Shown in pieces: positions 2,765 through 9,297 of a stretch of DNA of 64,000 bases; the stretch's first letter is position 1; every line of letters begins with the position of its first letter. The stretch is from Macrostomum hystrix (lineage: Eukaryota; Animalia; Platyhelminthes): positions 1,736,001 through 1,800,000 of the forward strand of contig CATNEN010000029.1 in NCBI GenBank assembly GCA_950097015.1, read 5' to 3'. The notes beneath the pieces were generated by a model. It was not told where the DNA came from, searched no databases, and was given only the letters and a program-made list of their open reading frames with translations. Both the position numbers and the translations under genes were made by a program.

Positions 2765-5700
2765 CTATCTTTTTCTGCGAGTAGACTTCTGAAATTTCCG
2801 CTGCGGATTAAATATATTTTCGCCGGCCTGTGGTTGAAGCAGTGGCTGTTGTGTGGTGAATGAAAAAGTAGGAATCGTCTGCTGTGGCTGCGGCTGACCA
2901 GTGAATGCAAAGCTGGGAGCCGCCGGCGGTTGTAACTGTGCCGGCGGCTGAGCTGGCATGCCAAAGCTAGGCGCAGATGGCTGCTGCGTTTGCTGGTGAG
3001 TGGAAAAGCTAAAGCTTGGCATTGCCTGTTGCTTACTTAAAAAGCCAAAGCTTGGCGCACCCGGTGTCTGTTGAGTTGACAGGCCAAAGCTTGGTGCACC
3101 TGATGTCTGTTGGGTTGACAGGCCAAAGCTTGGTGCACCCGATGTCTTTTGGGTTGACAGGCCAAAGCTTGGTGCACCCGATGTCTGTTGGGTTGACAGG
3201 CCAAAGCTTGGCGCACCCGGTGTCTGTTGAGTTGACAGGCCAAAGCTTGGTGCACCCGATGTCTGTTGGGTTGACAGGCCAAAGCTTGGTGCACCCGATG
3301 TCTGTTGGGTTGACAGGCCAAAGCTTGGTGCACCCGATGTCTGTTGGGTTGACAGGCCAAAGCTTGGTGCACCCGATGTCTGTTGGGTTGACAGGCCAAA
3401 GCTTGGTGCACCCGATGTCTGTTGGGTCGACAGGCCAAAGCTTGGTGCACCCGATGTCTGTTGGGTTGACAGGCCAAAGCTTGGTGCACCCAGAGTCTGT
3501 TGGGTTGACAGGCCAAAGCTTGGTGGACCCAGAGTCTGTTGGGTTGACAGGCCAAAGCTTGGTGCACCCAGAGTCTGTTGGGTTGACAGGCCAAAGCTTG
3601 GCACACCAGATGGCTGAGGCTTCTGTTGGTTTGCAAGGCCAAAGTTTGGCCCAGCAGATGGTTGAGACTGCTGTTGGTTTGACAGGCCAAAGCTTGGCCC
3701 AGCAGATGAGTGAGACTGCTGCTGTTGCTGGTTAAAAGCAAAGTTAATGCCTGAAAGAGATTGCGGTTGTTGGTCTAAGAAAGACGAACCAGCAGCCGAA
3801 GAAGTTTGCTGCGGACGGTTTTCAGACGAACCGGTAGAAAAGAGACTTGTTGGAGCAGTCGTTTGCTGCTGCTGACCTGAAAAAGAGAAACTGGTTGTTG
3901 CTGCTGCTTTAGCGCCCAATGAGACAAGAGAGCCTGGTGCGGATGGCACTTTACTGTCTGAGTTCAACAGCTGCGACTGCTGCTGCACCTGTTGGCCAAC
4001 ACGGCTAAAAAGAGAGCCGGAGCCGGCTGAAGCGGAACTTTTCTCTGAAGTTTGAACCATAGGCATGAAAGAGAAGGCAGCAGCAGTCTTCTGTTGCTGG
4101 GCTGGCTGTTGATTTTGCTGTTGCGAGCTCTGTTTGGATTGCGATTGTGTCTGACCGGAGCTAAAACTAAAAAGACCAAAACCACCTGATGAGGACGCTG
4201 ATGCAGTGGAAGCTACGTTTGTTTGAGACGGTGTTATGTTAGCGACAGTCGATACTACCGGTGCTTGAGTGAGACCGGAGCCGAATGGCTGATTAACAGT
4301 GGATGAAGTAGTCGCAGCGGAAGACGAGGGAACTGATTGCGTTGTAGCCGTGTGAGCCGCCGTAGTCTGTTTAAACAAGGTAGCACCAAAGAGCACAGCC
4401 CCGGCTGGGGTTCCGCTGGCGGAGGTGACATGTGGAGCGTCAGACTGGTTGAACAGGCTCCCACCACTGGCTGGCGTAGAGCTAGTTGACGAGATAGTCG
4501 GGCCGCCACCAAAGCCACCAAATGTAAACGATGATTTACTTCCGGAGATTGCTGATTCGGGCACGGAAGGTGCAGCAGAGGCGGCAGTCGTTGTTGCTGC
4601 TAATAAAGAGGGTTCAGTAACCATCGTACCAGCTTTGAAGTTAAACAGGGAAGCTACAGTGGCGGGTGTTTGACTAGTCAGATCAGGCGGTGGTGTTGGT
4701 TTTTCACTATGAGAGCCGCTATTGGCAGTGGCAGCGGTGGCGCCCACGCCGGAGGAGTTGTTGCCGACGCCTTGAAATTTGAAACCACCAAGATTTGTCT
4801 CACTGGTACTGGCTGCCGACTGGAACAGCGACGGCAAATGAGGGCTTCCTGACTGCGCAGTTGTGGTTGTACTAACGGCACTAGCCGAGGAAGCAGTTAC
4901 CATGCTAGCTGAGGCACTAACAGAGAGCGATGAGGCGCTCGTCACTGAGCTAGGCGGCTGGATGCTTGGGAAAGCTGAGAAACCAGCCAGAGAGGAGCCA
5001 ATAGTTTGCGGTGGCTGCGTCAATTTCGCCTGACCACTAGTAGTAAAATAATTTGCCGACTTTTCAATGGCAGCAGATGACTGAGTGAAAGAGGGCAATG
5101 AAAATGCTGGACCATCTTTTGCTAGGTTTGATAGGCCGTCTGCGAAAGACTTTGCTGCCTGGCTGAGTGTTGTGGGCACGGGGATTTGCTTAACGGGAGC
5201 GGCCGATGCAGTCGAAGATGCAGGTTTGGACACAGGTGAATTCAATAAAGTTTGGCCAAAAAATGAAGGAAGTGGAGCAGCTGCAGCATTTGAAGAAGGC
5301 CCTGTTTTAGTGGTCGCCGTAGGGGCTGCTAGCGACTGCAAGCTCACAGACGGCGTTGATTGCCCAGTAGGCAGAGAAGCTGATACTGGTGCTGTTGTCG
5401 GCTGGTTGGTGGCAGGTTTCGGAGGAGTTGCTGTTGACACGGAACTGCCCGTTGTTAAAGCGGCCGCTGGAGGCTGCTGGAGAAGCGAAATTAGCGGCGC
5501 GGTGGAAGCAGCCGAGCCTATTTTAGGTGTTGAGAGGGCAGGCGCTGGAGCCAGTGCAGTCGAGGAAGCGGCGCAGGTGGAGACAGAGGCTGTCTGTGCT
5601 ATGTTGCTCAGCAGTCGCCTGATGCGATCGCGTCGAGTCTCTCGGACCTGGCGCTCGCGTTGGCGCGCCTGCCGCTGAGCCACAAGACGGGACGTAGGGC

Positions 5701-6931
5701 TCTCTGCCTGGGCTGTTGCCATGCCAGTCAGAGACGTGTCATTTAGCAGGCGCCTGTACTGCTGCTGCCTCTCAGAGCGTTCTAGACTGGCTACTAGGGC
5801 TGTGACGGTCATTCTGGGCCGCTGCGGCGACTGACGGGGCGAAGTTAATGAACGTGACGCCGAAGGCGGTCTTACCACCGAATGATTTTGTAATGGGGTA
5901 GGCGACGAAGAAAGTGACATTACCGATGGGCCTTCGTTAAGCGCATTCACAGAGGCAATATGGTTATTAGCGGCTTCGCTTGGTATTGACGCAGCTGGCT
6001 GAGATTGCGACACGGAAATGTCAGTTTGGCAGGACTCGGATCGGCTGCTAACGCGAATTGCACCTGCGTTGCTTAAGATGGACGACACAGGCAGCAGGCC
6101 GGCAGAAGGCGAAATTGACATAAGGCTTGGCGATTGCTGCTCCACAGGTGTCACTATCGCCAATGGCATTGCCAGCTGATGACGCGGTGTAGGAGGACCT
6201 GTCTTAGCGTTGTCAGGCAGTACCTCGCTCAGCGACGTCGCTTTAAATGTTTCATCGCTAAACCGACGCCGCTTAGAATCTCGACGACGCTTGTGATTTT
6301 TTAGGTGATCTGGAGTCGGCGGATCCGACGACGCAGCCACTCCGCTGTCTACACCAGCAGACTCATTGTCGCTACAGTCAAGATCGACATCGGCGTCGTC
6401 GCTGAGCAGTTCGCCGGCATTAGCTGTGACGGCTTCGGCAGTTGATTCGGCCGGAGTCGTCGCGGAAGAAGGCGACGAAGAAGTCATTTGTGAGGCGCTA
6501 CGCTTGCGCGATTCGAGGATGCGCAGGCCGCGCAAGACGCTTTCGCGTTCGTCTAAATCGCGCGCTAAAGCGAAATTGGCGCCAGTAAACGCGGAGGCAC
6601 CGCTGCTACTGGCGCTAGAAGGCAAAAGTTGGCGACGGCGGTGGTCAAACGTGCCGGGCGCCTGTCGGACAGTCAGTACTGATGATGCAAGCGGGGGTGG
6701 CGGCGGCGGTGGTGGCAGAAGCCTCCGTTGCTGAAGCTCGTCGTTATAATTATTATTGGACATTGGACTGCCGACGGGCGCTGGTGGAACGAGTAAGCGT
6801 ACGCCGCTGCCGCCATTGGAACTGGTAGGTATCCCCGGCACACCGGGAGATGCCCCGGCCAATGCTGCAGCGGCAGCCGCATCGGCTGACCGCTTCGAGA
6901 AGCTGTAGTAGCCTTTAGCGTGACGGCGCAG
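2765..6931 (-). CDS. POM121/Nup153-like FG-repeat nucleoporin, one large exon
   Basis: Open frame from the acceptor at 6932 to TAG at 2765. Ser/Thr/Gln-rich with many FG/FSF/SFG motifs; basic NLS-like segments (RKRS, KRRRDSKRRRF); basic C-terminus RKFQKSTRRKR. No RanBP2 zinc fingers and no TM helix are visible. Confidence 0.8.
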   Translation of the reverse strand: MRRHAKGYYSFSKRSADAAAAAALAGASPGVPGIPTSSNGGSGVRLLVPPAPVGSPMSNNNYNDELQQRRLLPPPPPPPPLASSVLTVRQAPGTFDHRRRQLLPSSASSSGASAFTGANFALARDLDERESVLRGLRILESRKRSASQMTSSSPSSATTPAESTAEAVTANAGELLSDDADVDLDCSDNESAGVDSGVAASSDPPTPDHLKNHKRRRDSKRRRFSDETFKATSLSEVLPDNAKTGPPTPRHQLAMPLAIVTPVEQQSPSLMSISPSAGLLPVSSILSNAGAIRVSSRSESCQTDISVSQSQPAASIPSEAANNHIASVNALNEGPSVMSLSSSPTPLQNHSVVRPPSASRSLTSPRQSPQRPRMTVTALVASLERSERQQQYRRLLNDTSLTGMATAQAESPTSRLVAQRQARQRERQVRETRRDRIRRLLSNIAQTASVSTCAASSTALAPAPALSTPKIGSAASTAPLISLLQQPPAAALTTGSSVSTATPPKPATNQPTTAPVSASLPTGQSTPSVSLQSLAAPTATTKTGPSSNAAAAPLPSFFGQTLLNSPVSKPASSTASAAPVKQIPVPTTLSQAAKSFADGLSNLAKDGPAFSLPSFTQSSAAIEKSANYFTTSGQAKLTQPPQTIGSSLAGFSAFPSIQPPSSVTSASSLSVSASASMVTASSASAVSTTTTAQSGSPHLPSLFQSAASTSETNLGGFKFQGVGNNSSGVGATAATANSGSHSEKPTPPPDLTSQTPATVASLFNFKAGTMVTEPSLLAATTTAASAAPSVPESAISGSKSSFTFGGFGGGPTISSTSSTPASGGSLFNQSDAPHVTSASGTPAGAVLFGATLFKQTTAAHTATTQSVPSSSAATTSSTVNQPFGSGLTQAPVVSTVANITPSQTNVASTASASSSGGFGLFSFSSGQTQSQSKQSSQQQNQQPAQQQKTAAAFSFMPMVQTSEKSSASAGSGSLFSRVGQQVQQQSQLLNSDSKVPSAPGSLVSLGAKAAATTSFSFSGQQQQTTAPTSLFSTGSSENRPQQTSSAAGSSFLDQQPQSLSGINFAFNQQQQQSHSSAGPSFGLSNQQQSQPSAGPNFGLANQQKPQPSGVPSFGLSTQQTLGAPSFGLSTQQTLGPPSFGLSTQQTLGAPSFGLSTQQTSGAPSFGLSTQQTSGAPSFGLSTQQTSGAPSFGLSTQQTSGAPSFGLSTQQTSGAPSFGLSTQQTSGAPSFGLSTQQTPGAPSFGLSTQQTSGAPSFGLSTQKTSGAPSFGLSTQQTSGAPSFGLSTQQTPGAPSFGFLSKQQAMPSFSFSTHQQTQQPSAPSFGMPAQPPAQLQPPAAPSFAFTGQPQPQQTIPTFSFTTQQPLLQPQAGENIFNPQRKFQKSTRRKR
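3040..3700 (-). repeat. Coding 39-bp tandem repeat (PSFGLSTQQTSGA, ~14-17 units) forming the FG domain
   Basis: Unit GACAGGCCAAAGCTTGGTGCACCCGATGTCTGTTGGGTT on the + strand. Confidence 0.95.
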
Positions 6932-7157
6932 CTGAAATTAATAAAAAAAGTTTTTAAGTAGGCGAGAGGAATTTTTCTCCAGATCCGAACACAGACTGAA
7001 TGCAACAACTATAAGGCTAAAAAAAGACAAAAGACAACGAAAGGGGCACATGATCCACAGATGTGCACCGCAGTTTCAATCCAATGCCCTAGTTGTTAAG
7101 AACAAACAGGCAACAGGCAAAGTGGCAATGAAGACTAGCCACTATTCCTGGTCAAAA

Positions 7158-7163
7158 TTTATT
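7158..7163 (-). terminator. Likely RPS3 polyadenylation signal AATAAA
   Basis: TTTATT on the + strand, ~125 nt downstream of the RPS3 stop, followed by U/GU-rich sequence. Confidence 0.6.
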
Positions 7164-7288
7164 TTATCTCATGCCTTCTCGACGCTTTTAATGCACGCGC
7201 ATCTGCTTACGCCAGAACTGGCAACTAAACAAAAGCGATTCAATGTTCGCGTCGCATCCCAATCCGAATAGTTAGAATATGATCAAAT

Positions 7289-8411
7289 CTAGGCCGGCGC
7301 CGTGATTTCAGCCTGCGGCTTCTGCTGCTTATTCTCCGAATATGGCTGCGCCGGCACCGTCTGCTCCTTAGGATCGGCGATGGTCACGTGATCGGGTAGC
7401 GGCTTCCTCGAGGGGCCACCACCGGCGGGGGCCTCCCAGTTCTGCATGATCTTCACCTGGATGCCGAGCACGCCCTGACGCAGCTGGACGTGTCGCACGG
7501 CCCGATCGATAAAGCGAATCGACGGCTCACCGCTGTGGATCATGAAGCCTTCGGTGAACTTCATCGATTTGGCGCGCTGGCCACGCAGCTTGCCGCTGAC
7601 GATGACTTCGGCGCCCTTGGCGCCAGACTCGATGATGAATCGCAAGACGCCGTAGCAGGCGCGACGGACAGCGAGGCCACCGAGCAGCTTGTAGCGCAGA
7701 GACTCGGCCTGGAAGGTGGCGCGTTCGAAAAAAATTTTAGATAGCGGCTGAATAGGATTACAGGATGATTAACAGCTGATTACGGGATGATTAACAGATG
7801 ATTACAGGATGAAAAATAGCTGATAACAGGATGACTGACAACTGATTACAGGATGACTGACAACTGATTACAGGATGACAAATAGCTGATTAAAGGATGA
7901 CTGACAACTGATTACAGGATTACTGATAGCTGATTACAAGATGACTGACAGCTGATTACAGGACGAACGATAACTGACTTCAGAATGGAATAGAGTAAGA
8001 GAGTTCTCTGTTTATTACAGGATGGAAGGGCAAGTGAGAGAGCTCTGTCAAAGTGAAAAAACCACTTAAAAGCAATGCGAAAAATTTTTACCGACTTACC
8101 TGAGCAACGGCGGACAGTCCGCGATTGGCCATCTTCTCAGCGTAGATCTCAATCTGGCCATCCTCGAAGCCGAATCGTTTTTGAAGCACGGCGGTGAGCT
8201 CGCGCACCTTGCGGCCCTTCTCGCCAAGCACACTCTGCGTGCGGGTGGCCAGCACAATCACCTCGATCTTGGCCGGGGTGACGCGCAGCTCGATGCCAGA
8301 GTAGCCATCTTCGGCCAGTTCGCGCTTGAGGAATTCGTCTAGCTCGGCGCGGAAGACGCCATTCGCTACAAATGCGCGCTTCTTGCTAGTTACAGCATTT
8401 TTAGTTGCCAT
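7289..8411 (-). CDS. RPS3: 40S ribosomal protein S3 (uS3), 243 aa; exons 8411-8100 and 7708-7289
   Basis: [31 protein letters not shown]...RGLSAVAQ|[24 protein letters not shown]; canonical GT-AG phase-0 intron 8099-7709. Confidence 0.98.
7756..7978. repeat. ~22-23 bp minisatellite in the RPS3 intron
   Basis: GCTGATTACAGGATGACTGACAA units, ~10 copies. Confidence 0.85.
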
Positions 8412-8485
8412 GGTGCTACTGGTGCGGCTGCGGAATTAGAAGCGAAATTGAGAAATATTGAGTCATCTTACTACTACAACATTAA

Positions 8486-8647
8486 AACTGTCTGTGTGTC
8501 ACGGGGTGAAATCAGGATAGGAGCAAAGTTTATTTGAACACTGATTCACACGTTAAACACACTATACAGATGCTCTACCTGTTAAAATCTCTGAAATCAG
8601 CTCTGCAAGCTGTAATATGCTTAGCTGGTTCAGCAAGTGAACAGGCA
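8486..8647 (-). ncRNA. Box H/ACA snoRNA (copy A)
   Basis: Hairpin 1 CCTGTT/AACAGG + CTGAA/TTCAG; H box AGAGCA (8571-8576); hairpin 2 GTGTGT/ACACAC + GTGAATCAG/CTGATTTCAC; ACA at 8489-8491; 14-15 nt pocket-to-box spacing. Confidence 0.8.
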
Positions 8648-8713
8648 TCTAAATCATAAAATATAAATATTAAACTTGATTGATAGGCTAGAAGCAGCTC
8701 TTTTGTCAGTTGC

Positions 8714-8875
8714 TTTTGTCTGTGTGTCACGGGGTGAAATCAGGATAAGAGCAAACTTAATTTGAACACTGATTCACACGTTAAACACACAGTACAGATG
8801 CTCTACCTGTTAAAATCTCTGAAATCAGCTCTATAAGCTATAATATGCTTAGCTGGTTCAGCAAGTGAACAGGCA
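8714..8875 (-). ncRNA. Box H/ACA snoRNA (copy B, tandem duplicate of A)
   Basis: Nearly identical to copy A, with differences only in the apical regions and hinge; H box 8799-8804, ACA 8717-8719. Confidence 0.8.
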
Positions 8876-8934
8876 TCTAAATTATAAATAAGTAAAACAC
8901 TAAATACAACAGAAAAATATAATCTAATGGGCAT

Positions 8935-9297
8935 TATAATAATAATAATTGCAGGAGAACTGCGGGCAGTGGTACATCATTTAGTTACACTTGACCTGCA
9001 GCCAGTGAGGAGGCAATTCTGCCCATTTTGCCAACTCCTGAGCACACAAGCACACAGATACTCTACGCAGGCATAAGCTCACACAGGTGTGTACATCTGC
9101 CCTGACTTTCTCATTGTCAGGCAGTGTACATTTCACTGTGCCTTGGAGGTTGGCCCTCAAGGGCGTAAATTGCATGACAAGCCCCCAAGCCTTCTCTCCG
9201 CGGCTGGACCCTAAATAAATGTGGCCTCACTGTGGAATCAAACTTAGTGACCATGGTGCGAGAGGCAAACACAATAACCGCTCTGCCACTGACCCTC
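8935..9297 (-). mobile_element. tRNA-derived SINE, family 1
   Basis: Reverse complement aligns with 18647-18955 (A box TGGCAGAGCGG, degenerate B box, internal CCTGAC/GTCAGG hairpin); (ATT)n tail. Confidence 0.75.

Follow-up and report, generated by a model that had tools for sequence, protein, structure and literature searches.

The messenger RNA of an FG-repeat, nucleoporin-like protein of Macrostomum hystrix is trans-spliced: within the 64,000-nucleotide stretch of DNA analysed here (the window), the 3′ end of the Macrostomum spliced leader is joined to the minus strand at an acceptor ending at position 6932, and the AUG that closes the leader stands in frame with the long open reading frame that follows. 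From codon usage in frame 0, the two out-of-frame AUGs that come before the first in-frame genomic ATG, the weak context of that ATG and flatworm precedent, we infer that the leader AUG is probably the main start codon of the protein. The features concerned are collected in Table 1; all coordinates are those of the window and, unless otherwise stated, are read on the minus strand.

Table 1 Features of the trans-spliced gene and of the neighbouring RPS3 gene
Feature	Coordinates	Strand	Evidence
Trans-splice acceptor, U-rich tract plus CAG, TTTTTTTATTAATTTCAG	6932–6949	−	Leader attached after G6932 in cDNA contigs
56 ATG-free codons, LRRHAKGYYSFSKRSADAAAAAALAGASPGVPGIPTSSNGGSGVRLLVPPAPVGSP, in frame with the leader AUG	6764–6931	−	Translation, codon score
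First genomic in-frame ATG, weak context agtccaATGtc	6761–6763	−	Sequence
First out-of-frame ATG, +1 frame; stop of this frame at 6675–6673	6880–6882	−	Sequence
Second out-of-frame ATG, same +1 frame as the ATG at 6882	6814–6816	−	Sequence
Single coding exon of the FG-repeat, nucleoporin-like protein	2765–6931	−	Open reading frame; X7 contig unbroken over 4000–6932
RPS3 3′ UTR as seen in cDNA contigs, AATAAA at 7163–7158	7074–7288	−	Sequence, contigs
Spacer/outron from RPS3 mRNA to acceptor; U-rich tract at about 7017–7044, unused TAGs ending at 7017 and 7009	6933–7073	−	Contig-free
RPS3 5′ end, acceptor CAG ending at 8428, same leader	8409–8441	−	Contig ends in X7, X8, X1 and X2

The RNA evidence comes from 4 of 10 public runs matching the locus (X7, X8, X1 and X2), compared over positions 4000–9000. 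All four were used as assembled contigs, which favour dominant paths and are uninformative on rare isoforms, transcript ends and expression levels. The runs represent cDNA, since the RPS3 intron (7708–8098) is skipped in all of them, with 7707 joined to 8099. The junction at 6932 is carried by contigs from two runs of a single study. One of these, 3,384 nt long (X7, record 9), continues for 23 non-genomic letters beyond 6932, and the other (X8, record 17) covers 6390–6932 and has 22 non-genomic letters beyond. The extra letters of the X8 contig are ATGCAATAAATTGAGTCTTCGC on the plus strand, or GCGAAGACTCAATTTATTGCAT in the sense of the mRNA, with G6932 next; together with G6932 they read …GCGAAGACTCAATTTATTGCATG/CTGCGC, the slash marking the junction, that is, …TTGCATG/CTGCGC in the mRNA. 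G6932 agrees with the genomic AG as well as with the last letter of the leader. The junction of leader, ATG and CTGCGCCGTCACGCT that the original prediction had proposed as its check is thus present in both contigs.

The non-genomic letters are the 3′ end of the published 35-nt spliced leader of M. lignano, CGGTCTCTTACTGCGAAGACTCAATTTATTGCATG (PMC8629364, Ustyantsev & Berezikov 2021). Over its 3′ 25 nt the leader does not differ between the present species and M. lignano, and the acceptor at 6932 matches the [T/C]TNCAG motif of M. lignano trans-splice sites (PMC8629364). The 5′ end of RPS3 bears the same leader letters, up to 24 of them, in all four runs, which belong to two studies. At both genes the leader ends in AUG; at 6932 the unaligned …TTGCAT and G6932 together equal the published …TTGCATG.

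A cis exon, one of the findings that had been named as contradicting this arrangement, was rejected for the dominant form: no joint of such an exon to 6932 was seen within 4000–9000 in the contigs of the four runs, no contig of these runs lies on 6933–7073, and no copy of the leader was found in the 64-kb window with up to three mismatches allowed. An Rfam search of the whole window gave no matches. It is extremely improbable that the predominant transcript carries an upstream exon joined in cis or is spliced at a different acceptor, with the leader-bearing contigs representing a minor form or an assembly artefact. Such a form could be hidden by the survival of only dominant paths in contigs, the junction comes from one study only, and acceptor-like TAGs are present upstream in the spacer. 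Against it stand not only the missing joint and the contig-free spacer but also the position of the junction, exactly at a canonical AG that an artefact would miss, and the identity of the foreign letters, which are those of a known leader found on RPS3 too. A leader remnant of 22–23 nt is, by our reasoning, what would be expected from a k-mer assembler for a sequence common to thousands of mRNAs.

The acceptor and the ATGs around the start of the gene lie, base for base, where the original prediction had placed them. Directly after the acceptor, from 6931, the frame opens in phase 0 with CTG CGC CGT CAC GCT…, translating to LRRHAKGYYSFSKR…, and runs for exactly 56 codons before the first in-frame ATG; both out-of-frame ATGs, at 6882 and 6816, come ahead of it. 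The main frame is stop-free over 6931–2768, its stop codon being at 2767–2765, and a TAA at 6940–6938 closes it upstream of the acceptor. With this TAA on one side and the next in-frame ATG 56 codons downstream on the other, no genomic ATG can give the same N-terminus. The frame of the two intervening ATGs stays open past 6763. An open frame across the 56 codons is by itself weak evidence of coding, because a stretch of 168 nt remains stop-free in 27% of mononucleotide shuffles and the +1 frame is stop-free too.

In the mature mRNA no AUG precedes that of the leader, which is in frame 0, leads stop-free into the main open reading frame and gives MLRRHAK…. In the proposed course of events, the pre-mRNA would be processed by spliced-leader trans-splicing at the acceptor ending at 6932, the mature mRNA would read …UUGCAUG/CUG CGC CGU…, and scanning ribosomes would most likely begin at the leader AUG to make a protein of 1,389 amino acids starting MLRRHAKGYYSFSKR…. 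Since translation most likely starts there, the 56 ATG-free codons would be coding sequence and not 5′ UTR. The proposal that the leader AUG followed by CTG CGC forms the true N-terminus of the protein is therefore observed as far as the joining of the leader and the frame of its AUG are concerned, and is probable for the use of that AUG as the start.

Codon usage supports this assignment. A codon log-likelihood, for which the first 600 gene-body codons and RPS3 (its two exons joined) served as the training set, gave the 56 codons a score of +9.0 in frame 0; the other two frames scored −8.1 and −22.2. Non-coding control windows reached at most −7.7 in the spacer plus 3′ UTR and at most 0.3 in the RPS3 intron. 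The score of the extension is just under that of the lowest in-frame control window, 10.1 (mean of the controls 19.1, s.d. 3.7).

These values bear on the reading in which leaky scanning carries ribosomes past the AUG of a leader joined at 6932 and translation starts only at the ATG at 6763, the 56 codons being a long 5′ UTR that is open by chance. We regard this as unlikely. The context of the leader AUG on this mRNA is weak (U at −3, C at +4), as leaky scanning would have it, the frequency of open frames among the shuffles and the open +1 frame suit a chance opening, the extension scores below every gene-body control window, and word and HMMER searches returned no orthologue that would show conservation of the segment. 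Ribosomes would nevertheless have to pass three AUGs to reach a codon whose own context is poor (C at −3, T at +4, by contrast with CACCATGG at the RPS3 start). Re-initiation at 6763 after the ATGs at 6882 and 6816 is impossible, because their +1 frame ends only downstream of 6763, and the codon score is positive in frame 0 only and exceeds all non-coding controls.

RPS3, which carries the same leader and uses its own downstream ATG, might seem to favour a start at 6763. There the leader AUG opens a mini-ORF of four codons, ATG CCG CAC CAG TAG, whose stop (8418–8416) falls 4 nt ahead of the strong start of the gene at 8411, and it is plainly not the productive start. The leader AUG can thus be bypassed or followed by re-initiation, judging from this gene. 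The FG-repeat gene differs in that no such stop, placed right before a strong start, follows the leader AUG. The window therefore holds a contrast between a non-productive leader AUG on RPS3 and a probably productive one on the FG-repeat gene.

A further reading has both starts in use, the leader AUG giving a long form whose N-terminal segment is basic and 6763 giving a short one. Some leaky scanning is plausible given that all four AUGs are weak in context, and the basic first 18 residues might act as a separable piece for targeting or membrane binding. Most of the leaked ribosomes should, however, be caught at the two out-of-frame AUGs in between, and we consider dual use highly unlikely. 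With the leader AUG as the preferred start, the first 18 residues have a net charge of +4 and a moderate helical hydrophobic moment (0.54). Their assignment as a targeting or membrane-binding piece is speculation. A more far-reaching version, in which translation of the protein depends strictly on trans-splicing, the gene having lost its own start codon behind RPS3, and in which the 56-residue extension is a functional basic amphipathic signal (directing the protein, for instance, to membranes or the nuclear envelope), possibly beside a shorter form from 6763, is distinctly unlikely as a whole.

No relatives with which to compare the 56-residue extension were found in word searches of the whole protein with region 1–420 and of the N-terminal 170 amino acids, or in a HMMER search with residues 1–480. 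All searches used the window sequence without the leader, and leader-joined models served only for AUG contexts and residue properties. The HMMER search gave no relatives of the N-terminal 480 amino acids (window 5492–6931) at E ≤ 0.001 among 1.84 billion representative proteins, and this part of the protein appears to be lineage-specific or fast-evolving.

The coding exon comprises 1,388 genomic codons and a stop. The protein is rich in Ser (18%), Ala (12%), Thr (10%), Pro (10%) and Gln (10%), with no Trp and three Cys, and contains 24 FG dipeptides, 17 of them as PSFG, mostly within residues 800–1330 (about the C-terminal 40%), a low-complexity region of disordered type. A Pfam search with the whole protein found nothing; with the C-terminal 300 amino acids, Nucleoporin_FG scored 24.1 bits (E = 6.9e-5), below the cut-off of 32.2, so that no curated nucleoporin family in Pfam was matched at threshold. 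The clusters suggested by a protein-language-model atlas were POM121-like (0.88), Nucleoporin_FG (0.82) and Nup153 (0.76), values that serve as leads only. The name nucleoporin, as originally given to the gene, draws its support from the 24 FG repeats, the sub-threshold Pfam match and the atlas leads; on sequence grounds, the evidence reaches as far as an FG-repeat, nucleoporin-like protein. With FG nucleoporins of the POM121/Nup153 type it shares a C-terminal half rich in Ser, Thr, Gln and Pro that holds the FG repeats, and a basic C-terminal tail. It lacks RanBP2-type zinc fingers, any POM121 or Nup153 Pfam domain and a clear transmembrane helix, and differs from them also in its Pfam score and in its N-terminal region without relatives. 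The tail itself ends in …NIFNPQRKFQKSTRRKR (window 2768–2830), and may resemble the tails, likewise basic, at the C-termini of Nup153 and POM121 in vertebrates.

The stretch between RPS3 and the acceptor had been described as about 230 nt reaching back to the RPS3 AATAAA, with a U-rich tract and without a usable exon. The AATAAA, the U-rich tract and the lack of an exon hold, and the contig-free part is shorter, at 141 nt. RPS3 contigs end at 7074 (X7 and X8), 7086 (X2) and 7154 (X1), all but the last of these ends lying 72–89 nt past the AATAAA, and no canonical AATAAA was found near 7074–7100; contigs cannot fix transcript ends, the 3′ end of RPS3 included. Joining of the leader at 7017 would give a short reading frame ending before 6932, and neither of the TAGs at 7017 and 7009 is used in the contigs.

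Several contigs of X8 and X1 are RPS3-like, with 3–7 differences over 40–84 nt, at 7415–7498, 7530–7579 and 8211–8250. One, in X8, has a depth of 853, similar to that of the main RPS3 contig. A second expressed RPS3 copy, an allele or a different organism present in the sample may be the source of these contigs. Two sediment metatranscriptome runs (X5 and X6) contain 7–8% of the sampled words of 5600–8500, probably from the RPS3 part.

RPS3 and the FG-repeat gene have some features of an operon, being on the same strand, separated by a spacer of 141 nt, under the 1-kb criterion applied in M. lignano (PMC8629364), and with a trans-spliced downstream gene. In M. lignano the spacers between trans-spliced genes peak at roughly 100 bp (PMC8629364), a mode to which the present spacer is near. 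The pair differs from the M. lignano operons in belonging to another species and in that the upstream gene, RPS3, is itself trans-spliced; no polycistronic precursor is seen in the contigs, which cannot show its absence. The arrangement fits a downstream cistron that requires trans-splicing, and we infer that the two genes may share one transcript. A need of the downstream cistron for trans-splicing would explain why the loss of a genomic ATG is tolerated.

The use of a leader AUG has ample precedent in flatworms. In the accounts of Cheng et al. (2006) given in PMC12582326, PMC9851317 and PMC3510090, every flatworm leader reported has AUG at its 3′ end, this AUG works as an initiator in vivo, over 40 schistosome cDNAs need it, and its use has been conserved across the neodermatans. 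mRNAs whose initiator Met is supplied by the leader have been termed slORFs (PMC9851317; Cheng, Cohen, Ndegwa & Davis 2006, J Biol Chem 281:733). High conservation with the M. lignano leader is reported for those of M. hystrix and M. cliftonense, whose final ATG has been described as a translation start codon (Wiberg et al. 2023, PMC10468722). The mRNA described here shares with those of Cheng et al. (2006) the AUG-ending leader, the canonical acceptor, the in-frame position of the AUG and the lack of a genomic ATG at the start of the open reading frame. It differs from them in that the argument for needing the leader AUG comes from scanning logic and codon usage and not from a conserved orthologous N-terminus, and in that its host is a free-living macrostomid, for which the literature found holds only a passing remark on the leader ATG (PMC10468722). 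The next in-frame ATG here comes after 56 codons, whereas in Echinococcus an alternative one is often found no more than about 5 codons away (PMC3510090).

The mechanism is already known from Cheng et al. (2006), as those accounts present it; knowledge of trans-splicing is unchanged, and the gene is a further example of a known flatworm habit. Its gene model is corrected, since an annotator that requires an ATG in the genome would drop 57 residues or call the gene 5′-incomplete. The case also documents, for a genus of free-living flatworms, a leader AUG that is hard to dispense with, because 56 codons and two out-of-frame AUGs separate it from the next in-frame ATG.
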